From assembly GCF_035594765.1 (NCBI RefSeq), contig NC_085846.1:7055190-7119189 (forward strand): 64,000 nt of DNA. Reading direction: 5' to 3'. Shown here piece by piece: positions 32,039-64,000 of the stretch. The translations under genes were made by a program, and so were the position numbers. The notes beneath the pieces were generated by a model that did not search any database, was not told where the DNA came from, and was given only the letters and a program-made list of their open reading frames with translations. How positions within the stretch are numbered: position 1 is the first letter of the stretch; every line of letters begins with the position of its first letter. The DNA comes from Anolis carolinensis. Its lineage: Eukaryota.

Positions 32039-32569
<531 letters not shown>

Positions 32570-43741: not shown

Positions 43742-46700
43742 CTAGCTTTGTGTTCTGCTTTTGACTTGACGTGGGATGTTCTTGTACAGATCCTCTTCTT
43801 TTTCCTCTTCTCCCAGTACCTTGAATCCATTCTCCATCTTTGACGCTGGCTTCGGTTGTGTCAGAACAAGAGGTGCAAAGCTTGTCAAGTGTGATGGCTG
43901 AGCGCTAGAAAAGCAAAGAAAAAATTGAGGGCGACTTTAAACCAAAGTGTGGTTGTGTGTGGCCCCTAAGGCTGTTTTCATGGCACTCAAAGCTCCCAAG
44001 GCCACCTTTTCCTGAACTTCCTCCAAAAAGATAATTTACTTTTTGAGATAGTTATGGGGCACTCCTGTATTGTCTAAAGATTAAAAAAAACAGCACTCAT
44101 TAAATGAATCTATTGATTTAACTATGTGTGCATTTACACTGTAGAATGAATGCAATTTGACACCACTTTAACTGCCTTGGCTCAATGCTATGAACTGAGA
44201 TTTGTAGTTTGGTTAAGCACAGCACTCTTTGGCAGAGAAGGCTAAAGACGATGTAAAAATACATTTCCCATTATTCAATAGCATTGAGCCACAGCAGTGA
44301 AAGTAGTGCCAAACTGAATTAATTCTACATTGTTGATGCACCCTAATGCTGGATCTACACTGCCATATAATCCAGTTTCTGAATCCAGATTATCTGCTTT
44401 GAGCTGGACTATCCTAGTCTGCACTGTCATATAACCGAGCTCAAAGTAGATAATACAGATTTAGGAACCAGATTATATGGCCGTGTAGAAGGTGTGAGGA
44501 TTTGTAAAAGAGGCACCATGATGTGGTGAGTTGACTGGAAAGGGCATGTGTCGATGGCTGATTGGCTGAGTTAGCCAGGAGCCAGAATTCTGATTGGCTG
44601 CTGCCTCTAGCTTGGTGCTGAGACAAACGGTTTTAACTGCCACTTTCATCTCTGAGAGTAGCTGACTGGAACTGATCAGGAAGGAAATGGCTGCCATACT
44701 CTCCGAAGCCTGATTATTTATAAGGCAAATGAGGCATATTTAAAGACTGTTAAAAGGCACTGTTTATTCCCTATGTTCTCAGTGTGAAATCAATATTGTT
44801 GCCCTGTTTGATCTTTTGAACTGAAGTATAGATACTGTTACTGTTACAGTGACCTTTTATTATACTGCAGGGTTTATCTTGATTCAGAAACTGTGGTAAA
44901 GCTTCTATTTATTTATTTCTACAACCCCCAACAGATGGGCCTTAGACACAAATTCATTCAAATTGCAAGAAAGGGAGACTCCGGCCTCATCTACATCGCC
45001 ATGTAAAATCCAGACTGGCAGTGTAAATTCATATAATCCAGTTCAAAGAAGATAATCTCAATATTGTATGGCAGTGTAGATGGGACCTCCATCAAAACAT
45101 TAGGAAGCACTCCCTGATGGAAAGAGGTGTTTGACAATTTATATTATTGCCTATGAAGATTGTGGAGTTTCTTTCTTTAGGTGTCTTTAAACAGGTTGGA
45201 TGGCTGTTCTGTGCATTCATTGTTTGAATAGATGGGATCCGATACAATTCCATCATTCTACCTTTACCTGTATAATGGGCAATTAAGACGTCTCATTTCA
45301 ACATATTCGAAATAATTTTCTTCCTTGTGTTCCTCTGGCCGAACTGTTTCCTGGCGTTTTGGTGCTTAAACGGAAAACAAAGACAAAGAGGATGAGTGAA
45401 AAATGTGATATTAATCTTGTTATAGATATCTTTGTGATAATGATACTGCAATTTATGGATGGAAAGAACATTTGCTGGAAAAGGCCTCCGAACTCTTGGA
45501 AAAACCCCATCTGGAAGAACAGAACAGCTGAGCTAATTTTGCATAGTTTTCCTCTGGTGTTTGCACATCCCAATGTAAGGAGTAATTATGTTGAGCAGAA
45601 ATGTAGGTGTTACTCTGCACAAAAGTGATGATCTTTGTTGAAATAACACTTTTCCTGCTCAGAAAGAAAGCATTTCCTGTGCACAAAACACTGTTTCCTG
45701 AACAACCCCCCCCCCATTTATTTTAATCAAGAAAAATCAAAACTCACATAAGCTTCTACAGAGTAATTTTGTGTAATGTTTACATTAAGCAGAAAACTTA
45801 GGCAGAAAAAATGACATGCAAAAAGGTACAGAATTGGGGGTGATGCCTGTCTCAACAGCAATCCATGTGAAAAAGATCTTGGAGTCCTCACAGGGAACAA
45901 ATTAAACATGAGCCAATAATGTCATGTGGTGGCAAAAAAAGCCAATGGGATTTTGGCCTGCATAAATATAGTGTCTAGATTCAGGTAAACCATGCTACCC
46001 TTCTATTCTGCCTTGGTCAGACCACACCTGGAATTACTCTGTGTCCAATTCTGGGCACAGCATTGAAGGGAAATGTTGACAAGCTGGAATGTGTCCAGAA
46101 GAGGGCGACTAAAAGGATCAAGGGTCTGGAGAACAAGCCCTGTGAGGAGCGGCTTAAAGAGCTGGACATGTTTAGCCTGCAGAAGAAAAGGCTGAGAGGA
46201 GACACGATAGCCATGTACAAATATGTGAGGGGAAGTCATAGGGAGGATGGAGCAAGCTTCTGGAGACTAGGATGCGGAACAATGGCTTCAAACTACAGGA
46301 AAGGAGATTCCACCTGAACATTAAGAAGAACTTCCTCACTATGAGAGCTGTTTAGCAGTGGAACTCTCTGCCCCAAAGTGTGTTGGAAGCTCCTTCTTTG
46401 GAGGCTTTTAAGCAGAGGCTGAATGGCCATCTGTTGGGGGTGCTTTGAATGTGATTTTCCTACTTCTTGGTAGAATAGGGCTACACTGGATAGCCTACGA
46501 GATCTCTTCCATCTCTAGGATTTTATGATTCTAAGATGCATAGATAATTTGCATTGAAGTCAGTTTTGACTTTTGATGACCACTTCATAGGGCCTTCTAT
46601 GCAATATTTCTTCAGAGGCAGGTTGTAATTGTCATCTTTGGAAGTGACACTGTCATACAACTGAATTATACAACAATGTGATTTGCCCAAGGCATCCCAG

Positions 46701-49700: not shown

Positions 49701-50832
49701 AAAAACACTGACTACTAACAAATTGACTACAAATAAAGATAGAATTGCATAAAATGAACTTAGAGTAACAACACTGTCAAAAAATAAATCCATAAAACAT
49801 TCAGTCCTTGCTGCCTAGAGAAAGATCTGAGGATCTGGGCAGGAGGCAGACTGCATTGGATAATCCAGAAAGTTGGATAAATGAATGTTGGATAAGTGAG
49901 ACTCTACTGTAGTAGTATTGCAGTTTGACAGAACACGAACTGCCATGGCTCAATCCTATGGAATCTGGGGATTTGTAGTTGTGTGAAGTATTGACTCTTC
50001 CCTGTTGGAGAGCCCTGGAGTCACCACAGACTTTAAATCCCAAATCCCATGGGGTGGAATCATTGCAGTTAAAGTGGTGTCAGACTGCTATAATTCTACG
50101 GTGTACATCTGTTTTGATGGGACTTGGTAAATCAAGACTGGCAAAAATCCTATGAATATTATAGTTACTAATTGGGATGAATACCTGAAATATGGCTGTT
50201 AAGTGTTGGAAATCTTCAACTACACAGCTTGTAAATAACCTGTTGATAAGAGTGACTTCTCCCAATCGATAATTGGTTGCTATTCCATGGACCAGAATAT
50301 TGACTGACAAATGGAGTTAAATGAAAGTTCACATAAAGCAGTAAGTACACAAAAAACAAAATATAAAAATAATTTAAAAAATGAAAATATACAGTTTTGC
50401 CTGTTATCATCCTGCCTACTGCAGGATTGCCGGTTGCAACAGAAATATACCAAAGACTTGGAAAGTCAGCCCTGCTAGCTGAAAGCCAGTATGAATCAAC
50501 CTTGAATCTATTAATAATGAAAATGAATTGACATCTTCTTAACAACAAGGAAAGTCCATTTTACCTGCAGAAGCGGATTGCCAAAGGAGCTGGAAAAACA
50601 GCGGAAGAAGAGAGAGGCATGAGACTTTGAGGGAAAGAGAAAGATGGAGATGATGAATTGCCTTCTGATAGGGCTGAGGTGAGATATTTTGCTGGGTGAG
50701 GTCTTGCGTCAATCGGTACTTCTTCACCAAACAAAGATGTTTGATATCCAAAGATGGCTCAGTTAGAAAGTCCCACATCCACTTCTCTCCCATTGCTAGC
50801 AGTAAAACAGAACAAAATAAATCAGTGGCCAT
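43742..50832 (-). CDS. Ig-superfamily type-I receptor A: 2 C2-type Ig domains, TM, tail with YxxM and YxN motifs (about 351 aa); first splice donor is defective
   Basis: Exons 50791-50832 ([14 protein letters not shown]), 50565-50589 (LLWQSASA), 48995-49282 (Ig: NLTC...DSGMFSCIY), 48089-48412 (Ig: LLTC...FHFFRN...TGIFTCRY), 46919-47035 ([29 protein letters not shown]), 45268-45364 (YFEYVEM), 43742-43904 (EEDLYKNI...*). Phases are consistent and there are no internal stops. The intron 1 donor reads GGAGAG. Confidence 0.78.
44493..44933. mobile_element. Probable solo LTR
   Basis: TG...CA termini and a 5-bp TSD GAAGG/GATGG. It splits the terminal GTGTAGAAGGGCC of a MITE and contains two CCAAT boxes. 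Confidence 0.55.
45790..46535 (+). mobile_element. CR1 LINE 3' fragment
   Basis: [16 protein letters not shown]...[17 protein letters not shown], and a CR1 3' UTR ending ...ATGATTCTA. Confidence 0.85.
47174..47939 (+). mobile_element. Internally deleted mariner transposon
   Basis: TIR CGAGGGTTGAATGAAAAGTAATGCCTCCACCTTCGT with its inverse at the right end, preceded by TA. The N-terminal HTH ORF ([12 protein letters not shown]...VHRW...) is joined to the transposase C-terminus (LVHRWQKCI...GDDVE); the DDE core is missing. Confidence 0.88.
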
Positions 50833-51684
50833 TTCTTACTATCTTATGGATTGTTGGCTTGAGTTTGAGGACCATCTCAACCCTACCAACAGTGGAGAAG
50901 GATGCACCACCAGTGCTTTCAGGACACCCACATTTTCCCATCTGAAACAGCCTGTTTTTTTCTGTCCAATGAAAGGGCCGTCCCTGTTCTATGAGCTAGA
51001 TAGAGAAAAGTGGGGCAAAGAGGTCACCAACCTATTTCCAAGGCAATGATGATCTTGATGGTCCCAGTTGAGTCCTCAGGTCTACTTCCACCCAGTTCTA
51101 CCTTAGCAGCACTATTATCTTGCAAGACAGAGATCTAGCCAGGAAGCGTCACCTTTTTCTCTCACTTCCACCCACACGCAAAAACAGCAAACCCACAACT
51201 CAAGCCAAGCCAACACACAACTCATCTTGTGGGCTTTGGTGAGCAGAAAGGTGTGCATTTCTTGCCGCTGAAGGCAGCTTTCCACATCCGCTTTCCTGTG
51301 GCTCCTTCTGTCTTCTCTCACCACCAAAGCCTCTTTAGAAAACAAAAGAACTGCTGCATGGAGAAAACAATGGAAGGGGAAAAGAAACATGGGTGGCTAA
51401 TGTCTCTTTACAATGTGTATTGTGACTAATATTTTGTTAGAAAACATTAATCAAAGAGGTGGAAGTCGGGGGGGGGGGGTGAAAAGGAACGGCAGAAAAG
51501 GCAGATATCATCATTGGTTGCATCAGTGACACTCAGCAAATCTCCACTGTGACAAATTCAACCACATTGACCATTTGTGGCCCTGCAACCTTCAAAGGTT
51601 CTTCATTGACAGGTTTACACACATTTCCACATGTTGAACCTGAACTGACCGCCAATAACAACAATTGGGCCGAAGGAAGATAAC

Positions 51685-51861
51685 CTAATGCTGAGGATGT
51701 TGCATATATTGATTTCAGTAAGGCCTTTGACTAAGGCTTCTTCTACACTGCCATATAAAAATCCAGATTATCTGCTTTGAACTGGATTATGTGGCAATGT
51801 GGACTCATATAACCCAGTTGAATGCAGATAATGTGGATTATTTGCTTTGATGATGATGATG

Positions 51862-51918
<57 letters not shown>

Positions 51919-53450
51919 TATTTATACCCCGCCACCATCTCCCCTTGGGGGTGGTTTACATGGGGCAAAGGCCCGAACAACATTGACGAAATAAACAACA
52001 ATATAAATACAATTCACAGTATAAAAGATAAAAACAGTAATACAATGTAAAACAAGAATAAAACAGTTGATAGTATCAGTCAACCACCAGGCACAGTTCT
52101 ATCATCTACTTAGGTGGAGAAACTGGAGCAGCAATGCAAGAATAGAATGATACGTTAAGTGCATAGACAGTAAAGACCTAATAAAATACAGGATAGAATT
52201 ATACCATCTGGGGCTGATTATCAAATGACTGTCTAACCAAAGGCCAACCAAAACATCCAGGTCTTTAATGTGGATTATATGGTAGTATAGAAGGGGCTGC
52301 AGTCCCCCATGATCTCACAAACTAGTAAAATGTGAGTGAGATAATACTACTGTTAGGTGGTTTTGTAATTGTTTAAGTGACTGAACCCAAAGGGTGCTCC
52401 CCAATGGTTACTCTTCATCGTGGAAAGAAGTGTCTAGTGCAGGCATGGGCAAACTTGGGCCTTCTCTCCAGTGTTTTGGACTTCAACTCCCACAATTCCT
52501 AACTGCCAGCATGGGCCAAAGTTTGCCCATGCCTCGTTTAGTGGGCTTTTAAGTACTGTTCAACATCTTTATTAATGACTTGGTTGAAGGTTTAGAGGGC
52601 AGGTAGATCAAGTTTGCAGATGACACCAAATTAGGAGGGACAGCTAATACTCCAGAAGACAGGATTAGAATTCAAAATGACCTTCTCATATTAGAGAATT
52701 GGGCCAAAACTAATAACACGAATTTCAACAAAATCTGGGATATTTAACTTAGACAGAAAAAGGATGGATGATGCCTAGCTCAATAAGATACATGTAAAAG
52801 GCATCTTCGTGGATAACAAGCTGAACATGAGCCAAGAGTATGATGCAGCAGCTAAATAAGCCAATGGGCTGCATCAAAAGGAGTATAGAGGATTAAGGGA
52901 AGTCATGGTGCCTCTCTATTCTGCTTTCTTCAGACCTTACTTGGAATAATAACCCTGTGTCTAATTGTGGACCTCATAATCAAAGAGAGATATTGACAAT
53001 CTGGAATGTGTCCAGAGGAGGGCGACTGAAATGATCAAAAATCTGGAAACCATGAATCCCTTTGAGGAGTGGCTTAAAGAGCTGTGTCTGTTTAGCCTCC
53101 AGAAGAGAAGGTTGAGAGAAGAGGACATGAGAGCCATGTTTAAATATTTGAAAGGATGTCATAAGGAAGATGGAGCAGCTTCCTTTCTTCTGCCCTGGAA
53201 ACTAGGACTCCATACAGCAATGAGTTCAAATGATAGGAAAGAAGATTCCACTTGAATATTAGGAAGAACCTCCTGACTGTAAGAGTTGTTCAACAATGGA
53301 ACTCTCTGCCTTGGAGTGTGGAGGAGGCTCCTTCTTTGGAGGTTTTTAAACAGAGGCTGGATGGCCACCTGTCAGGGTTGCTTTGGCAGAAGGGATTGGA
53401 CTGGATGACCCATGGGGCTCTTCCACATCTAAGACTCTATGAGTCTTATA
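51685..53450 (+). mobile_element. Degenerate CR1 LINE with nested MITEs and an (AAT)n tract
   Basis: RT motifs (DFSKAFD, KFADDTKL) and the ORF2 C-terminus, with many frameshifts. Confidence 0.8.
51860..51913. repeat. (AAT)n microsatellite
   Basis: About 18 perfect units. Confidence 0.9.
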
Positions 53451-54264
53451 TTTTTAGCTGACAGAATACATCTCTATTCATCCCTAGGACCTCCAATGGG
53501 ATTCTGACTGGAAATGGTCATAGAATCATCATGTAGTACCTAGAAGATGCCCATAGAAAACATGTTTTTTCAATCGCATATAGGGCAGCAAGCAACTAGG
53601 GAAATTACACACACGTATCGGACCAACATAATTTTTGTTGTTTATATTATTTTATTTAAATATTTCCATCCTGTCTTATATCATGGGATCTTAGACCACA
53701 AGTAAAACCAATGGAAGCAGTTTAAAACAATTCAACATTTATTTTGGAGATTATTTAATATTTATTTGTTTCTCTTTCCCATAACAACCCACAAGAGTTC
53801 CCAAGGCAATGAAGAAATAAAAGCTAATTAAAACAATACACATATAAAAACATTAAAATGATCTTTAAAAACTCTAAACATTGTCTAGAAATAATCCTAG
53901 GATCCAGTTTTGAAATTGTTAAAACAGCAGGCTAAACACTGAATGCTATGAGGAACAGCATTCGTATGACTGTCCACCTAATTTCCTTCGGTAGGGAGTT
54001 TCAATTATTTTTTGTAATGGCAAATTTTTTCATAAAACAGGATGAGATAAAAGTGTAAGATTTCTAAAAGCTGAGTGTGCAAGAGAAAGTGAAACTCAGT
54101 CCTATAGAGGTGCAAATATATTTTAGGATTCATCTTCAAATAATTGTGAACTATGGCAGATACACAACAAGGATGGACTTTTGTTGACACATTATTTTCT
54201 GCTGTTTTAAGTGCTGATGGAATTTATTTGTGCCGAAGCAATCTATCATATTGGGTTTGCAACA

Positions 54265-57200
54265 TCAAGACATCCCAGGTTTTAGGTGCTTCCGGTCGAT
54301 TTCTTTCTTTACTTTCTTAATGCGAATATCGCTATACATGACTCCTTTCTCTTCAGTATATGAGACTGTATTCTCCATCGCTGGTCCAGAACGAGGAGGA
54401 GCAGGCAGGAAGGCAAGCTGGGCATAGGCCACCTCTGAATCCTATAGAGACAAAGGGAAGTTGATTAAGAAGTTGCTCAGACTAGAGGCAGCTGGAGTTT
54501 CCAAATCAGTGCTAAATCCCCATTGAACTTCTGTGGAGCTCTCCATGGTGCTGAACCTAATCAATGGGACTTTATGGAGCTATCTAAGGTGCTGAATTAT
54601 AAATGGACTTTAAAAGAGTTATCCAAGGTGCTAAACTTTATCAGTGAATGCTCAACTCAAGCAATGGGATTTTAAGGAGCCCTCTAAAGTGCTGAACTTA
54701 ATAAGTGGGACTTTTGGAGCTATCTAAGGTGCTAAACTTACTCAATGGGACTTTATGCTTTTTTTTCCATGTCAGGAGCAACTTTAGAAACTGAAAGTCA
54801 CTTCTGGCGTGAGAAAATTGACCCTCTGCAAGGACATTGCCCAGGGGATGTCCAGATGTTTTTGATGTTTAACCATCCTTGTAGGACACTTCTCTCAAGT
54901 TCCCACATGGGGAGCTGGAGCTGACAGAGGGAGCTCATCCATGCTCCTCCTGGATTCAAACCAGCAACCTTCAGATCAGCAACCCAACCTTAGGTCAGCA
55001 GTGCTTCCAGCACAAGGGTTTAACCCATCGCACCACCAAGGGCTCCATCTAAGGTGCTGAACTTAATCAATGGACTTTTAAAGAGTTATCCAAGATGCTG
55101 AACTTTATCAAGAAGTGCCAAATATAATCAATGGGACTTTAAGAGCCCTCCAACATATTAAGCTTTGCCAATGGGACATTTGTGCTGTATCCAGTGTGAT
55201 AAGCTTTATCAGTAAGACTTTCAAAAGCTATCCAAAGTACTGGACTTTTTCAATGAAGCATTAAGGGGCTGTCCAAAGTGCTGGACCTTAAGAATAAGAC
55301 TTTAGCAAGCTAGCCATCATTTTATTTAGAGCAATGTTTACAAACTGGGAGGATTTCTTTCTATTTATCAAGGGACTCGGTGAATGATGTTTATTTCCAT
55401 TAAGGGGCAAAGGAAAAAGTAAACATTAGATGCAGATATAGTCAGTTTTTTAACTGAGCAGAAAAAAAAACAAGGGATGCTCCTTAGAAGTTCATAGATA
55501 AACCATGACGGGAAGATGATGGCCTCCTTTCATTTATCACCAACATGAAATAAAGAAAGACAAATTGCTACTAAACCTGGAAGGTCTTATCACTAGTACC
55601 TGCAGAAGAACAAATACATGTGTGTGAATGTATTTCTTCTTCATAACGTCTGACCTAGGGAACGCACTGCATCAAGAGCATGTCTTCATAGAATACACAC
55701 AAGCAAACAACTTTATGACTCCAAAGAGACATGGGTTAAAGGGGAAAATGGCTCACAAAAATGTTCCAATTAAGAAAAAACACCCTACAGTTATGAGTGT
55801 TCAAAGCACATACAAAAATTGTGTGAAATTTCAGATAGTGTAGTTGGACTTAAAAAGAATTAAAACCGGTGCAGAAATGGGAGACTTATAGAAAATCAAA
55901 TCCATCAATCAATCAGACCTGTAAGTCTTGGTCTCTTGATGTTTCCGATTTCGGCTTTTGACGCTCCTTCTTATTCTTCTTGTTTTCTCCTGGATCACAT
56001 TCTTGATAAGATGTGGATGCTTTCAAAGAAAAAGAAAAGACAAGTGAGTGAAAAAGTAATCTGTATTGTCATCTTCATTGTCTATTTATTTATTTATTTT
56101 TGGCAATTTTCCAACAAATCCAGCCAGGAGATTGATTTCCATCTGGGAACGTATTAAAAATATGCAAAGAGCTCTATCGCATACCACAGATCTTTCTCCT
56201 GAAGCAGAAAGCGATAGGAATCATCAACAGGATTATAAATGGAACCGCAAACAATGCATGAACTGGAAATTCAGACACAGGACTGGAAACTGGTAAAAGA
56301 AAAGAATAAGTAAAATGTTTACTATTTCCCTGAGGTAGTTTTAAATAACATCTAACCTTTTCATGAAAATTTGGGATGGATGAATAAAACCCTTAAGGTT
56401 AACTGTTAAAATATCCAACAAAGCATCATGCCTCCAGTTCTTGTCCAGAATATGCCTTCCAGGAGGTGATTTGGATCTGCTGATGGCTAAGAGATCAATG
56501 GAACAATTGATCTGCTTTAAAGGACATGTTGAAACTACAGAGCGTAGAATCCAGCAGTTTGGAAAGCTCCTTGAAAGTCTGGACTAAACTGAAGTGGTTT
56601 CCCAAGCCCATTCATGTAGGCATCACTGTTCTTATGAAGGTAAAGGTAAAGGTTTTCCCCTGATGTTAAGTCTAGTTGTGTCTGACTCTGGGAGTTGATG
56701 CTAATCTCCATTTCTAAGCTGAAGAGCCAGCATTGTCCATAGACACCTCCTAGATCATGTGGCCAGCATGACTGCATGGAGCACTGTTACCTTCCCGTCC
56801 GAGTGGTACCTATTGATCTACTCACACTTACATGTTTTCAAACTGCTTGGTTGGCAGAAGCTGGAGCTGACAGCGAGAGCTCACTCCACTCCCCAGATTC
56901 GAACCGCTGACTTTTCAGTCAGCAAATTCAATAGCTCAGCAGTTTAACCCACTGTGCCACCAGGGCTCCACTCATATGAAAGGCATTCTCAAAGGTAAGA
57001 GGCAAGTGATCATAATAGAACGAAAGAGAAGTAGTATTAAAAACTGAAACTAGTAGTATTAAAAACTGGAATTCCTATAGAACAGGTATGGAAAAACTTT
57101 GGCCCCCCAGGTGTTTTGGACTTCAGCTTCCACAATACCTAACAGCCTCAGGCCCTTTTCTTAAGCAGCTGAGGGGGAAAAGAAAGGGGCCTGAGGCTGT

Positions 57201-60200
57201 TAGGAATAGTGGAAGTTTGCCCATGCATGCTATAGAACAAAGGCCTAATCCAAATTTATGGAGCCCACAATCCAGATTGATGATATTCCATGCCCTGTTT
57301 CCTCTGAAACACCTCATGTGTAGCAGTCTGGGCTTCATGAAGGCACCTGGGTTTTCTCCTCCCTTAACTGCCACCAGGTTCTTTGATTTTGAGTAAAACA
57401 CAATAACAAGAACCCCCTTTCAGTACAAAGATCTAATCACTAGCAAGCAATGCAGCCTCCCTCCCCAAAGGGACTCACCTGTGATGTTGACCTTCTGGCT
57501 CCAATGAGACATGATCCACCTGCCACTCATGCTTTTTTTATACCTGCAGGTATATTCCCCTGTCAGGTTGGGCTGAGCTTGTAGACAGATACTCAGGGAG
57601 ATGTTGGAAGAAGCGTCTCCAGGCTCTTTGGAGCAATCCAGAGGCCTTTGGTTGGTGGCCCCAATCTCAGCTCCATCCTTGTAGAAATAGAACTTTCTCT
57701 CCATGTGGTTCCCATTGGATGAACAAGTTATACGCATGGTGTCCCCTGCCAGTATCATTCCGGATGCAGGATCCATCTTCAGATCTGGAGTCGGGGGAAG
57801 ATCTGGAGAGCAATCATCAGGAGAAGATAAGTAAGGAGTGCTGAAATGGCTCTGTGAGCATCATTCTGTGGCTTTGAACAGAAGCCCAGCCAGCACCAGA
57901 TAACTGCATGGAGAACCAGAGATCTGACACCAGGTCCTTTTCAGTCAATGCCTAGTTTGGATGAGCAACGATGGAATCTTGTGATTTCAGGGACCTGGTT
58001 CTTGCACAGCTCACATGCCCACTCCATCCCAGCCATGCAATAAAATCCAGAACCTAAAACCATCACGTTAACTCTTTCCTCTTAATTCCTTTCACTCCTT
58101 CAATAAAGATATGCAGTATTATAGAATAAATCCAGATCCCGGAAGCAGCTTACTCGCCTATATATTTTAGTAGACAGAAAACTTTTTTCTCTAGTTGGGA
58201 AAAACGCTGAAGGTAGTGGTTCTCAACCTATGGGTCCCCAGATGTTTTCGGCCTATAGCTCCCATAAAAATAAAAACTATCTTAAATTAATTGATTTCTG
58301 GTTCAGATATCTAACATCACTATATTCCTGCTCCAGGACTTCAGCTGAAATGCAGTAACAACTGCTTACTTTTCCTTCCATCTCATTTGTCCTACCTGTC
58401 TTTCGCTAAGTGAAATAGAGTTGCAAAGAAGAAATAATAGAAAGAGAACAGTAAAATAAGCAGGGTTAAGGTGAGGATCTTGTGTCTCTCCAAATGACAT
58501 CCAGAATTCCTTATCATTGACTATGCTAGCTAGGACTGATGGGAGGTGAAGTCCAAGAACATTTGAAGGGGACTACCACCTCCATCAGAAACAAACAGTG
58601 GAGCTGATATAAAGAGAGACTTTTCTGGGGGCAAATTGACAGGGAGTCACTCACCTCTCACCACGATGGAGACAGTGTTGCTTTTCTGGGACTGAATCTC
58701 CCGCCCTTCTGCAGTCAGAATCCAATACACACAGACATAGGTCCCATTAGTGTTTTCATCCACTTGGAAAGCTTGGCGGGGTTCTTTCCCTTCAAGGAAT
58801 AGTCGCTTACTTTGCTGGGTTTGTCCCTCTCTGAGGAATCTGTATCCGGCCACATCTTGTCCCTCTGGAGCCGTGCAGTCCAGGCTGAGCTCTTCTCCGG
58901 GGATGTAAAAGGGATACTGAGGATCCAGGGAGAGAACTGGACCTCGAGGAGGTTCTGCAGCTCCCCACAAAGAAGGAAAGAAAACCATTTGGCCAGTTAG
59001 TATACAAAATTATGAAACGCTGAAACTCCAAAGTTTCATAGAAACACTAACAAAATGCTTTGAGGAGTTTATATATACAATTGGACTGTACGTGTGTTAC
59101 TAAAAGGACACTTTTTGTTCCATCAAAACCAAACTTAGAAAATGGGATCCCTTCACTCTGCCCTCCCTCCTCCACCGGCATCCTTCAGGTGCCAATCAAC
59201 CACCCCCAAAATGTGGAGCCTTCAGACCAGGCGAACATTGAAAACTCATTAACCACGAAACCAAAGAACTTACTTATAATGGAGATGGCTATGCTGTTAC
59301 TCCTTGGAGACTGAAAACTTCTTCCTTTGTTATCTTTGGTTTTGTAAAAGCAAATAAAGGTTTCCTTTGATTCCAGGTCTGTTGCGAGGATTGCCAAATA
59401 TTTTCTTGTGTGTTCCTTGTATGTAGTCCATTGACTTGGTCCGTTCATTCGAGAGAGAGAGAACCAAAATGCCGTCTGTCCTGCTGGGGGCTCGCAATTG
59501 AACCAGATGAACTCGTAGCTTACAAATGTGCTGTACGGGGTGGACAAGGAGAGTGTTGGGGCTGGAAGAGATGCTTCTCCCTGTGAACCTGAAAAAGGGA
59601 AAGAGATGTCCTTTGGTCCTCTCCTTCTGACCTCAACAAAAAAGAAATACCTAAGTATTGAGGAAAGTATATCTATTTGTACCTTTCAAAGCAGTGGTCT
59701 CACCCAGGGACTCCTTCCTATCAATTAAAGGCCCAAAGAAGTCCCCAAGACTCAGGGCCAAACCCTCCTGAGGTCTCACACCCCTCAAATGGGATAATGG
59801 CATCCATTCCTTATTCTTACCTGCAAAGGGATCCAGTAAATAAAGAACTGCTGAAAGAGGGGGAAAAAGAAAGAAAGGAGTTGGTCAGCTTCCACACTCC
59901 ACTGGGCTAATGCAAACAAAGGGGACAAAAGGTGGGAGAGATATCAGTAAAGACAAGCAAAATGACAGAAAGAGCTTCGGAAGGATGGGAGACAGCCAAC
60001 AAATATGGTAGGCTCATGAAGTCTTCAGAAATTGATAGAAGATCTGAAAGCACAATTTCCTCAGAAACAACTGAGAATGACAAAATATTGCATCTGGTTC
60101 TTCAAATTGGCTGTTGTTGGCGTGCAATAGAGGCCGCCATTTTCCCCTTGAAAATGCTGTTTCGCTCCTGCTCCTTCAAAATAGGAAATAAAGCCTCTCT

Positions 60201-60633
60201 TCTGTCCGTAAACCAGCTTAAATGCCCTAAAAGCACCAGATCTAGCCTGACCTTGGAAACTAAGCAGCGGCATCCCTACCTTGTATTCTGATGTGACATT
60301 GCCAGATGCTGTAGAGCTTATTTCTTGCCTAAGAAAACCCATTGGGTTGCTATAAATCAACAGCAGATTGAAAGCTCATCAATGGTGCAATATCCTCAGA
60401 AGCAACAGCGTTAGTAGTGGTTCCTTAAAAAACCTGCCACCGGGGTGTAGGAGGACCACCAAAGTTTTCAAGTGGCCCTAGATGCTCCTTTAAATGCTGG
60501 AAAGACCCCTGATCCACATAAAGAAGCTGAGGGAAAGACATCAAAAGAGAGCAATGATATGATAATGGGATGCAGGGTGGTGAGAAGCGAAAAGGGAGAA
60601 GTCCAAACCTGCAACCAAGGCCATGGACCCCAT
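54265..60633 (-). CDS. Ig-superfamily type-I inhibitory receptor B: split leader, 3 C2-type Ig domains, TM, two ITIMs (about 458 aa)
   Basis: Exons 60609-60633 (MGSMALVA; the donor GTTTGG is weak, so this exon is the least certain), 59821-59850 (30-nt mini-exon), 59274-59588, 58655-58954 and 57479-57802 (three phase-1 Ig exons with paired Cys), 56185-56289 (TM ALFAVPFIILLMIPIAFCF-RRK), 55919-56019, 54265-54441 (VAYAQL and VMYSDI). 1377 nt, open throughout. Confidence 0.85.
54505..55312. repeat. Degenerate minisatellite (about 37-bp period) interrupted by a SINE-like insert (about 54760-55046)
   Basis: Repeating unit similar to GAGCTATCCAAGGTGCTGAACTTAATCAATGGGACTTTA. Confidence 0.7.
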
Positions 60634-61785
60634 CCTCAGCCAAGAGGCCCAGATGCCTCCAACGCTGCTCCTCGGATCCTCCACCGCCTTGCTTTCCCTC
60701 CAGACAGAGCCAGGCCTGTCCAGCTCATCTGCAAGGAGCTTCAGCAGCAGAGACCAAGGCAGGAACTGCGTCACCTCCTCTCTCTCTGCCCACCGGCCCC
60801 CCAGATTCACACCTCCAGCCAGGCGCACACTCAGCCTATGGGCTCCTGGCCCTGCTTGGCCACACCAAAGAGGTGCTTTCCAGCCCCATGGCGCAGCTGA
60901 CCGCATCCGGCTTGGCTCTGCCCCCCCTTCCTGGCCCTTTGAGCACAACAGGGCTTCTAAATAACCAGAGAGTTGCAGAGTGGGGCAGGAGGTGAGAAAA
61001 CAAAGGAACAAATGAGTAATTGCTTTTCACCAGCCTGCAGGTTGGTTTGGGTTTTGGCCTCCAGCCTCCTTCAAAGACCTCAAAAACATCTGGAGGGATT
61101 CAGTCGAACCTCAGGATGACCCTTCCAAGCCAGGGACCCCAGGCACCATTCCTGCCCAAAGTCAAGACATATGTGTTGTGAGCAAAATGATGGCCCATTA
61201 GTGACGATAATAATAGATCTCCCATTCCTTTTATTTTGAACCATCAGAAGACTTTTTCTACATCGAAAGATGAAACTGTGAGTCTGGGCTGTATTTAAGA
61301 GAGAAGGCACCATAGATTCAGCAAACAGCAAAGAAAATTACACACACCTATGAGACCAACAGAATTCTAGTTTTCTTTATATTATTTTATTTAAATATTT
61401 CCATCCTGTCTTATACCATCATATCTTAGGCTACAAGTAAATATAATTGAACATTTATTTATTTCATTCCTTAGCATTGTATTTGTTTCTGTTTCACGTA
61501 CCAACCTATAAGGGTAATGAACAAATAATAAAATAATACAAAGATTAAAAAAATTCTAAAATACATTAAAATAGACAGTGGTTTTATCTTGTCTATTGTT
61601 GTAATACAATGATACAGATCTCCAAATAATTGTTCAGTATGGCAGATGCACACAATGTGGATGGACTCTTGGTTGACACATTCTTCTCTTTGAGGCACCA
61701 AAGGAATTCATTTGTGCTGAAGCAATAGTGCATCCTGAGTTCGAGATGTCTCATGCAGTTGGTTCTTTCTGCTATAAATCAATCT

Positions 61786-64000
61786 TTATTTTCTTGTTCT
61801 CTTGGTGTGAATCTCACCATACATGACTCCTTTCTCTTGCACCAGTGGGTCCACCCTCTCCATCGCTGATCCAGAAGAAGGAGAAGCAGAAGAGAAGGCG
61901 AGATGGGCATAAGCCACCTCTGAGCCCTGCAGAAGCAAAGAAAAATTGAGGATAGAGACCAGGGACAGCTGGACGTTTCCAGTTTGGTGCTGAATCAAGT
62001 AAATAGGATTTGTGTGTGCTATCCAATGAGCTAAATTTTATCAATAAGATTTTAAAAAGCTATTCATACTGCTGAACACAATGAATAGGAGATGAATCTC
62101 TTTCATAAGATTCGTCCCTTTGGATACTTCAATTAAAGCCCTGCAGCAGATTAACTTGCAGCCCAGACATAGAACCCAAGTAGAACAAATTATGTCCCAA
62201 TTTGGGAAAAACATACACCCTACAATTATGAGTCTCAAAAGCCCATGCAAAAATTATATCAAACATCCTATAGAGTGTCTGGATTGAGAAATAATCACAA
62301 ATGTCTCAGCGATGGGAGGCTACATCTTACAGAAAATCCATCCAATCTGTCGCTACCTGTAAGTCTCTGTCTGTTGGTTCTTTGGATTCCAGCCGACAAA
62401 GTTCCTTCTGATTCTTCTTGTTTTCTCCAGAATCACATTCTTGATGAGGTTTTGATACTTTCAGAGAAAAGAAAAGACAAGTTGGTGGAAATATGATCTC
62501 TGCTGTCATTTTCATTGTCTTGTTGGGCAAATTACCAACAAGTTAAGCAAGAAGGTGGATTCCAGGGATGTTACAGACCCTTGGTTACAATATGAAAACT
62601 ATGAAAGAGGCCCCACCAGCTCAATCACATACCACAGTTCGTTCGCCTGAAGCGGAAAGCGAAGGGAATCACCAACAGGATCAGAAATAGAACCGCAAAC
62701 CATGCTGTGTATGCCGTTTGAAAATGCACAGAACTGGAAACTGATAAAGGAAACAAATGAGCAAAATATTTACTGTTCCCCACACATTCTTTGTCTCAAA
62801 TTTTAGCATATTCTTGAAAATTCAGAGTGGATTAGTAACAATACTTTCAATATAGAAACCCTTAAGGCTAGCTGTTAAAATGCCCCCCAAAAAACCAAGC
62901 CTCCAGTTCCTTGTCCTGGAAAAAGGATCTTCTTATATGACTTTCAGAAGGTAACTTGGATCAAGTTTTTATAGACAGATTCCAGAAAGGAAAAGACAAC
63001 AGATTATAAAGGACTGTGTACACATGTGTTTTTCACAAACACATGAAGATAACCCATGAAGAAAATGGTAAACTGTCATGATATTTTTCACACTTTAAGA
63101 GTGATTTTTTCTTGACATTCATTTGTGTCACAAAAAAATTCATTTAGTGTTTGAAATAAAAATGGGGGTTTGAAAGCTGCTACAGTCTCACCCAGTTATC
63201 CATTTTTGCATGAAATAAATAGAATGGAATGAACAACACATTGCACATTTAATTCAATCATCCCTGGAAGAACACCTGGTGGCAGCAGGTGGCTAACAGA
63301 TCAATGGAGTAATGCATAAGCTTTAAAGAAGGTGTTGAAACTACAGAGAATAGAATCCAGCCCTTTGGGAAGCTTCATTAAGCTTTAGACTAAATTCGGG
63401 AGTGGATTCCATTCCTGTGGTTTGCACTAAATCCAGAAATGGGTTTCCATCTGTGCTCACATGGAAACCATCCTCATAAGTGAGAGCCGAAGGACCCTAA
63501 CAGGCTGAATATCAACATCAAATAAGCAGCATTTGTGGCTGGAACTGGGACCCGACAGAACAAGGGCCTAATCCAGATGTATGGCACCCTCAACCCAGAG
63601 TGACGATAATCCCCAACAATGGTCCCGTTTTCTTTGCAACACCTCATGTGTAGCAGTCGAGGCTCCCCAAAGGAACACAGCTTTTCTCCTCCCGTCATCT
63701 CCACCACGTTATTTGATTTCAAGCAAAACACAGTAATAAGAATCCCCTTTCAGTACAAAGCTCTAATCACTAGGTAGCAATGCAGCCACCCTCCCCAAAA
63801 GGACTCACCTGTGACGTTGACCTTCTGGCTCCAGGGAGACAAGATCCACCTGCCGCTCATGTTTACTTCATACCTGCAGGTATATTCCCCTGTGTGGTTG
63901 GGCTGGGCTTGTAGGTGGATGCTCAGAGAGACCTCGGAAGGGGCACCACCAGACCCTTCGGAGCAATTCAGAGACCCCTGGTTGGGGACCCCAATCTCAG
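61786..64000 (-). CDS. Ig-superfamily inhibitory receptor C (paralogue of B), 3' part; 5' exons lie outside the window
   Basis: Exons 63809-64000 and beyond (…HTGEYTCRYEVNMSGRWILSPWSQKVNVT), 62633-62740 (TM WFAVLFLILLVIPFAF-RFRR), 62357-62457, 61786-61926 (VAYAHL, VMYGEI, stop). Confidence 0.85.

Follow-up and report, generated by a model that had tools for sequence, protein, structure and literature searches.

A 64-kb window of Anolis carolinensis chromosome CM069372.1 (at about 7.10 Mb, approximately 7,055,190-7,119,189, free of N) carries three genes for immunoglobulin (Ig) domain receptors, here termed A, B and C. We consider that the window is probably the edge of a tandem cluster of paired immune receptors, in which B and C would be inhibitory, paralogues with an arginine in the transmembrane (TM) segment would be activating, and gene A would be a rebuilt co-stimulator. 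Its kind of paired-receptor family is known, although one conserved member is unusual, and no description of this family was found in the literature searched.

Six-frame translation and splice-site mapping of the window located five complete Ig exons and one partial Ig exon, all on the minus strand and none left of 43 kb. Genes A, B and C all lie on that strand, with exons bounded by GT-AG, Ig exons in phase 1 and open joined frames, which confirms the three co-oriented Ig receptor genes of a preliminary description of this DNA. The TM exon, cytoplasmic exon of about 100 nt and last exon that it ascribed to all three genes are likewise present, with the cytoplasmic exon measuring 97 nt in A and 101 nt in B and C. 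Four of the five complete Ig exons matched Pfam Ig families at E<1e-5; gene B domain 1 had no match at this threshold, and aligns with the others with conserved Cys, Tyr and Ser. Database searches used single exons or existing protein entries as queries, with joined exons reserved for local frame checks and comparisons; local BLAST of the joined models was run against the already retrieved proteins. As had been described, the tails of B and C end in two canonical immunoreceptor tyrosine-based inhibitory motifs (ITIMs; VAYAQL and VMYSDI in B, VAYAHL and VMYGEI in C), and gene A has none. The ITIM tyrosines of B and C are 30 residues apart, and no charged TM residue is present in A. Two ITIMs arose by chance in 0.3% and 0.08% of shuffled B and C tails, respectively.

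A scan downstream, as the preliminary description had proposed, found nine more co-oriented paralogues on the same chromosome at 7.176-7.245 Mb. Three are of ITIM type (C', C'' and B3, the TM and cytoplasmic exons giving the type of C'', and the last exon of B3 being partly seen), and six have an Arg near the start of the TM segment, where gene C has Leu, and a tail free of Tyr where it was seen. With 57 kb unseen and its far end not reached, the cluster comprises at least 12 genes over at least 146 kb, and extends at least 125 kb past the window end. The end of the window, 57375-64000, recurs at 97.7%, and members of classical activating type, their ectodomains almost identical to those of the ITIM type, lie 65-125 kb past it. 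ITIM and Arg-TM members form sister pairs, namely B and R4 (support 100/99), B3 and R5, and C'/C'' and R3. The features that define paired receptors are found together here: ITIMs with an uncharged TM segment in B, C and the ITIM-type paralogues, a charged TM segment with a tail that is Tyr-free where seen in six members, and near-identical ectodomains on opposite types within one cluster in the pairs B-R4, B3-R5 and C'-R3. This bears out the paired inhibitory and activating family that had been suggested and, judged by sequence, the predicted true partners of B and C are the Arg-TM paralogues and not gene A.

Comparison of B with R4 gave a nonsynonymous rate (dN) of 0.022 in domain 2 and 0.016 in domain 3. 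In domain 1, 34 of 315 nt differ, compared with a divergence of 1-2.6% in the introns on either side (Fisher p 6e-14); the Nei-Gojobori method (NG86) gives this domain a synonymous rate (dS) of 0.123 and a dN of 0.116. Domain 1 of gene B is 90% identical to domain 1 of R5 and of B3. Because dS is close to dN and the block is shared with other paralogues, domain 1 of B appears to be a mosaic arising from exchange by conversion or shuffling. Positive selection on this domain, considered from its 22 nonsynonymous and 4 synonymous codons, was rejected, as the NG86 rates are equal and the block matches other paralogues. At one retrieved paralogue locus (L008, 16867-16944), a copy of a tail exon is inverted.

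Comparison with its orthologues shows gene A to be an old conserved gene under purifying selection rather than the twin of B or C. Its domains are 20-35% identical to those of B and C. Orthologues were identified in Sceloporus (62%), Podarcis, Zootoca and Rhineura; they form a clade with 96/86 support in a tree for which only the Ig domain was used, and each locus showed a single copy. The gene order B-A-H2B-H4 is common to anole and Sceloporus, and in Podarcis a B-type gene precedes A. Relative to Sceloporus, gene A as a whole has a dN/dS of 0.41 and its domain 1 a value of 0.24, compared with 0.85 for domain 1 of gene B. When the tail of A is aligned with ITIM tails, the proximal ITIM Tyr is replaced by Phe, the distal ITIM has become LYxNI following an acidic run, and a YxEM is present in the cytoplasmic exon, with the YxxM and YxN motifs 50-52 aa apart. 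Five genera keep EY/FxYxEM in their gene A orthologues; LYxNI is kept in all four that have a complete gene A tail, the truncated Rhineura model showing YxEM only. The alignment thus identifies the tail of A as a putatively remodelled ITIM tail, with the proximal Tyr changed to Phe, the distal motif converted to YxN, and a YxxM gained. In DAP10 and DNAM-1, YxxM binds PI3K p85 and YxN binds Grb2 (PMC7226588), and this analogy suggests that the tail of gene A may signal directly via PI3K and Grb2. The lack of an ITIM in A was correctly described, but the role of A as paired partner does not stand for an old gene with its own YxxM/YxN tail.

Transcript evidence for gene A came from a read-contig query of 5,621 letters, with the RNA status of the runs being the tool's guess. 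Contigs from four runs in four studies joined four exons (domain 2, TM, cytoplasmic and last), each at its predicted site, as the preliminary description had asked of reads, and the joint between Ig1 and Ig2 was seen in two of those runs. These contigs fit mRNA because introns are skipped, and splicing at the phase-2 junction therefore fixes the frame of the tail. All these runs carry one allele, distinct from that of the window and in part matching an older anole protein, and its tail motifs are unchanged. A gene A paralogue as the source of these contigs was rejected as less likely, as five amino-acid changes match the protein of the older anole assembly. Neither of the results that had been named as fatal to the original proposal, 1:1 orthology with a non-immune gene or a lack of spliced reads, was obtained for gene A.

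The split leader described for A and B holds for B, but that of A survives in anole only as a remnant. The first exon of A in the NCBI model starts at an intron-derived ATG at 50793, and both anole assemblies are modelled with a 77-aa leader that begins at this in-frame, intron-derived ATG and ends in a hydrophobic core. The damaged leader exons (window 50565-51055) have apparently been replaced by an open, intron-derived first exon of 229 nt, and the signal peptide of A has possibly been remodelled recently in anole. The segment 51353-51322 was rejected as a leader exon of A, and is likely upstream non-coding sequence conserved in Sceloporus. No named gene could be assigned, in agreement with the preliminary description, since A is the uncharacterised LOC103280461; NCBI models do nevertheless exist at the locus, with a 226-aa fragment at gene B and two neighbouring paralogues fused in one 'FCRL5' model.

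Inhibition through ITIMs and SHP, and activation through a TM Arg and FcR-gamma, are known from other receptor families. By analogy, binding of ligand to B or C would lead Src-family kinases to phosphorylate both ITIMs, on which the tandem SH2 domains of SHP-1/SHP-2 could dock, and the six Arg-TM paralogues, bearing near-copies of the same ectodomains, would activate via an adaptor with an immunoreceptor tyrosine-based activation motif (ITAM), such as FcR-gamma. The pairs would stay matched through duplication and gene conversion, processes that would also shuffle domain 1, where ligand probably binds; expression is presumably in leukocytes, and pathogen pressure may lie behind the pairs. Gene A, older and at the edge of the cluster, would have had its ITIM tail rebuilt and would send its own signal via PI3K p85 at YxxM and Grb2 at YxN, probably acting as an adaptor-free co-stimulator and not as a decoy of B. 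A broader proposal, to which we give a little less than an even chance, is that this is an unnamed, sauropsid-wide third branch of the leukocyte receptor complex (LRC)/FcR superfamily, serving as a main paired system of lizards and snakes with three signalling modes within one cluster: ITIM, TM Arg, and a conserved co-stimulatory PI3K/Grb2 tail that was converted in place from an inhibitory one and needs no adaptor.

Several observations weigh against the paired cluster with a co-stimulatory gene A. The leader of A is eroded in anole relative to Sceloporus, with the ATG of leader exon 1 deleted and the acceptor AG of leader exon 2 lost; pairwise dN/dS shows no clear positive selection among the members compared; some paralogues look broken, with a frame shift in domain 1 of R2 and only a partial match in domain 3 of B3; and the Arg TM segment reads WWAVRF, with no Asn at -3, and so departs from the NxxR/DYT consensus of mammalian LRC activators. 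In addition, the Grb2 site of TIGIT inhibits, via SHIP1 (PMC7226588), because of which the sign of the gene A signal is something that we only infer. It is conceivable, if rather unlikely, that A is modulatory or inhibitory, with its YxN recruiting Grb2-SHIP1 as in TIGIT, or that its motifs drive endocytosis, with B, C and the Arg genes acting as proposed above. The descent of A from an ITIM tail and the inhibitory, immunoglobulin tail tyrosine (ITT)-like Grb2 site of TIGIT would fit such a role, and YVEM and YKNI also match the YxxPhi sorting consensus, but all A orthologues have lost both SHP-docking ITIMs and gained YxxM, and YxxM with YxN is the activating combination of DAP10. We regard as similarly doubtful that A is decaying or yields little surface protein in the green anole, its tail having been conserved for function in other lizards. 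This possibility arises because the signal peptide exons are damaged, and one NCBI isoform that begins within domain 1 and the long anole branch of A in the tree are consistent with it; the frame is, however, open throughout with the constraint given above, the motifs are intact in all alleles seen, splicing recurs in four studies, and the in-frame ATG supplies a leader in two assemblies.

Affiliation with other Ig families bears on two further alternatives. An AlphaFold model of the two domains of A (predicted local distance difference test score 82) ranked OSCAR, LILRB4 and KIR first in Foldseek, and in VIA gave CHIR-AB1 (Z 11.9, tied with others), PirB, LAIR1 and LILRB4 on top, closely followed by PECAM-1 (Z 11.0), FcgammaRI (10.6) and FCRL5 (10.0). 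Ranking of PDB entries by sequence profile gave FCRL5, PirB, FCRL4 and LILRB2, interspersed with titin and CEA, and FcgammaRI also stood high; this ranking is driven by domain number, and scores per domain are similar for FCRL5, PirB, FCRL4, LILRB and FcgammaRI. That the genes are true FcR/FCRL members, possibly Fc receptors for IgY, would agree with the leading position of FCRL5 and with the automatic names given by NCBI. It is nonetheless improbable: many domains add up to the FCRL5 score, the names are inconsistent, structure places the LRC first, albeit with FcgammaRI and FCRL5 about 1-2 Z behind, and the second leader exon is 30, 36 or 39 nt long rather than the 21 nt that is the rule in FcR/FCRL (PMC2413239). 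Least likely are non-immune or adhesion molecules like PECAM-1, Allergin-1 or HIDE1, duplicated by chance. Language-model neighbours (Allergin-1, HIDE1 and PECAM-1), the PECAM-1 structure score and weak HIDE1 Pfam matches, which fall below cut-off, point in this direction, but matched ITIM/Arg-TM twins, lineage-specific expansion and mosaicism of domain 1 are traits of paired receptors, and no characterised 1:1 orthologue was found.

A profile of the membrane-proximal domain retrieved 980 representatives at E<=0.001. Named relatives come from lizards, snakes, turtles, alligator and many birds, and more distantly from sharks and a frog, under automatic names such as FCRL5, IGSF1-like, A1BG-like, HIDE1 and CD22-like; automatic names of this sort mislead, IGSF1 being specific to eutherians (PMC6557307). 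Twin-ITIM, Arg-TM, Asn-TM and short-tail forms recur among them. The tree, drawn within the family on 106 columns and with many weak forks, sorts relatives by lineage and not by tail type, and no informative neighbour genes were seen at the bird and turtle loci examined for synteny. From the predicted relatives, the family is sauropsid-wide, such that the paired system of the preliminary description stands but its restriction to squamates does not. Turtles, alligator and birds have in common a member whose short tail (DDPS-S/T-Y/I-xP) is conserved; it is possibly an old single-copy framework gene. Turtle members with Asn in the TM segment and a tail of 3-7 aa are a candidate second activating type. 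Snake members outside the gene A clade have TM Arg and YxN-type tail tyrosines, possibly an independent ITIM-to-YxN conversion; snake copies lie on contigs of 145-155 Mb, which we take to be probably the Z chromosome. An ostrich model beside a family gene fuses Ig domains with a seven-transmembrane receptor domain (locus L010, 17276-26114), and is probably a mis-fused annotation beside a G-protein-coupled receptor gene.

The natural killer and myeloid cell receptors of reptiles are nearly uncharted, and this cluster supplies candidate receptors by which lizards and snakes could recognise missing self or pathogen decoys. The family bridges a gap among Xenopus, chicken CHIR and the mammalian LRC. 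As a natural example, gene A shows cleanly how changes at defined tyrosines rewire an inhibitory tail, here into a probably activating one that has been kept in iguanians and lacertoids, and the exchanged domain 1 of the ITIM/Arg twins is a pointer to the surface that would bind ligand. Coordinates of all gene features are collected below.

Features of genes A, B and C, in window coordinates
Feature	Position	Strand	Evidence or remark
Gene A last exon	43742..43904	-	TSFAPL degenerate proximal ITIM, YKNI, stop; spliced contigs
Gene A tail motifs	TSFAPL Phe 43879-43877; YxN motif YKNI 43786-43775	-	tail alignment
Gene A cytoplasmic exon, 97 nt, ends phase 2	45268..45364	-	YxxM motif YVEM at 45305-45294
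Gene A TM exon	46919..47035	-	membrane span without charged residue; spliced contigs
Gene A Ig domain 2, membrane-proximal type	48089..48412	-	Pfam, spliced contigs, structure model
Gene A Ig domain 1	48995..49282	-	conserved; dN/dS 0.24 vs Sceloporus; Pfam, spliced contigs
Gene A leader region	50565..50793	-	ancestral 36-nt leader exon 2 at 50600-50565, acceptor lost; comparison with Sceloporus
Gene A leader exon 1 remnant	51032..51055 (start approximate)	-	start codon deleted relative to Sceloporus
Gene B last exon	54265..54441	-	ITIMs VAYAQL 54432-54415, VMYSDI 54342-54325, stop
Gene B cytoplasmic exon, 101 nt, ends phase 0	55919..56019	-	splice mapping, open frame
Gene B TM exon	56185..56289	-	span without Arg/Lys
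Gene B Ig domain 3	57479..57802	-	Pfam, splice mapping
Gene B Ig domain 2	58655..58954	-	alternative acceptor 58960; weak HIDE1-type Pfam match
Gene B Ig domain 1	59274..59588	-	mosaic among paralogues
Gene B leader exon 2, 30 nt	59821..59850	-	39 nt in its twin and in Sceloporus
Gene B leader exon 1, includes start codon	60609..60633	-	splice mapping, open frame
Gene C last exon	61786..61926	-	ITIMs VAYAHL 61917-61900, VMYGEI 61827-61810, stop
Gene C cytoplasmic exon, 101 nt	62357..62457	-	splice mapping, open frame
Gene C TM exon	62633..62740	-	uncharged span
Gene C membrane-proximal Ig exon, cut by window end	63809..64000	-	97.7% duplicate has three Ig domains

To the left of the array, the window holds histone genes, six tRNAs and KIF4 exons. 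The histone and tRNA cluster (21258-41940) includes H1, H3, H4 and two near-identical copies of H2B (about 32042-32422 and 41557-41937), and no H2A frame was seen in the window. Kinesin exons of KIF4 type, with KIF4 as best PDB match, occupy 1-8100 on the minus strand. In birds and mammals, KIF4A presumably maps to another linkage group, and these exons may represent a second KIF4 copy or a break in synteny. A viral-contig scan gave no match, and PDB searches with single exons gave generic Ig matches only.

By analogy, the family is predicted to work like CHIR, LILR and KIR. It leans towards the LRC because of its layout and structure ranking, with the NxxR consensus lacking; it is thus probably LRC-related rather than FCRL-related, as a putative member only, and it cannot be filed under LRC proper or FCRL proper. 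C2 Ig domains with one phase-1 exon each, a split leader and two tail exons, which form the exon pattern of the LRC, are present in the anole genes, with the leader of A eroded. With chicken CHIR, the anole family shares C2 domains, the split leader, the seven-exon layout, twin-ITIM and TM-Arg types, and tandem expansion. CHIR genes have seven exons, all of one phase except the last (PMC1458963), and gene A has a CHIR-like layout of seven exons with a different phase in the last. Unlike CHIR, the anole family has members with three domains, identity is about 20%, CHIR was absent from the named homologue matches, its relatives in birds are distinct genes whose tail differs, and the YxxM/YxN type of gene A has no counterpart in PMC1458963.

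The mammalian LRC receptors (LILR/PIR, KIR, LAIR1, OSCAR and GP6, with IGSF1/A1BG) likewise have an N-terminal TM Arg in their activators, and supply the top Foldseek matches. LAIR-1 has a VxYxxL ITIM pair 30 aa apart (Y251/Y281), as do B and C. Leader exon 2 is 36 nt in LILR and KIR, as in Sceloporus A. In contrast to these receptors, the anole family lacks the NxxR/DYT TM segment, is 15-22% identical, and has histones, tRNAs and KIF4 as neighbours, on the one side reached, rather than the flanking genes of 19q13.4. FcR/FCRL and Xenopus XFL resemble it in their C2 domains and in profile scores per domain similar to those of the LRC, and XFL also in paired expansion, but the anole genes differ in leader exon 2, in their two-exon tail and in a layout like that of KIR and CHIR. 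Receptor-borne YxN (Grb2) and YxxM (PI3K) motifs are shared by gene A with the group of DNAM-1/TIGIT/CD96, DAP10 and CD28, which are unrelated genes with V-type domains or adaptors, the two motifs being merged as YINM in DAP10. Reptile CEACAM (PMC13278318) is a different family, in which the N domain is IgV and the tails hold full ITAMs, yet it similarly combines an ITIM receptor and activating paralogues that have signalling tails of their own, with gene conversion between the pairs.

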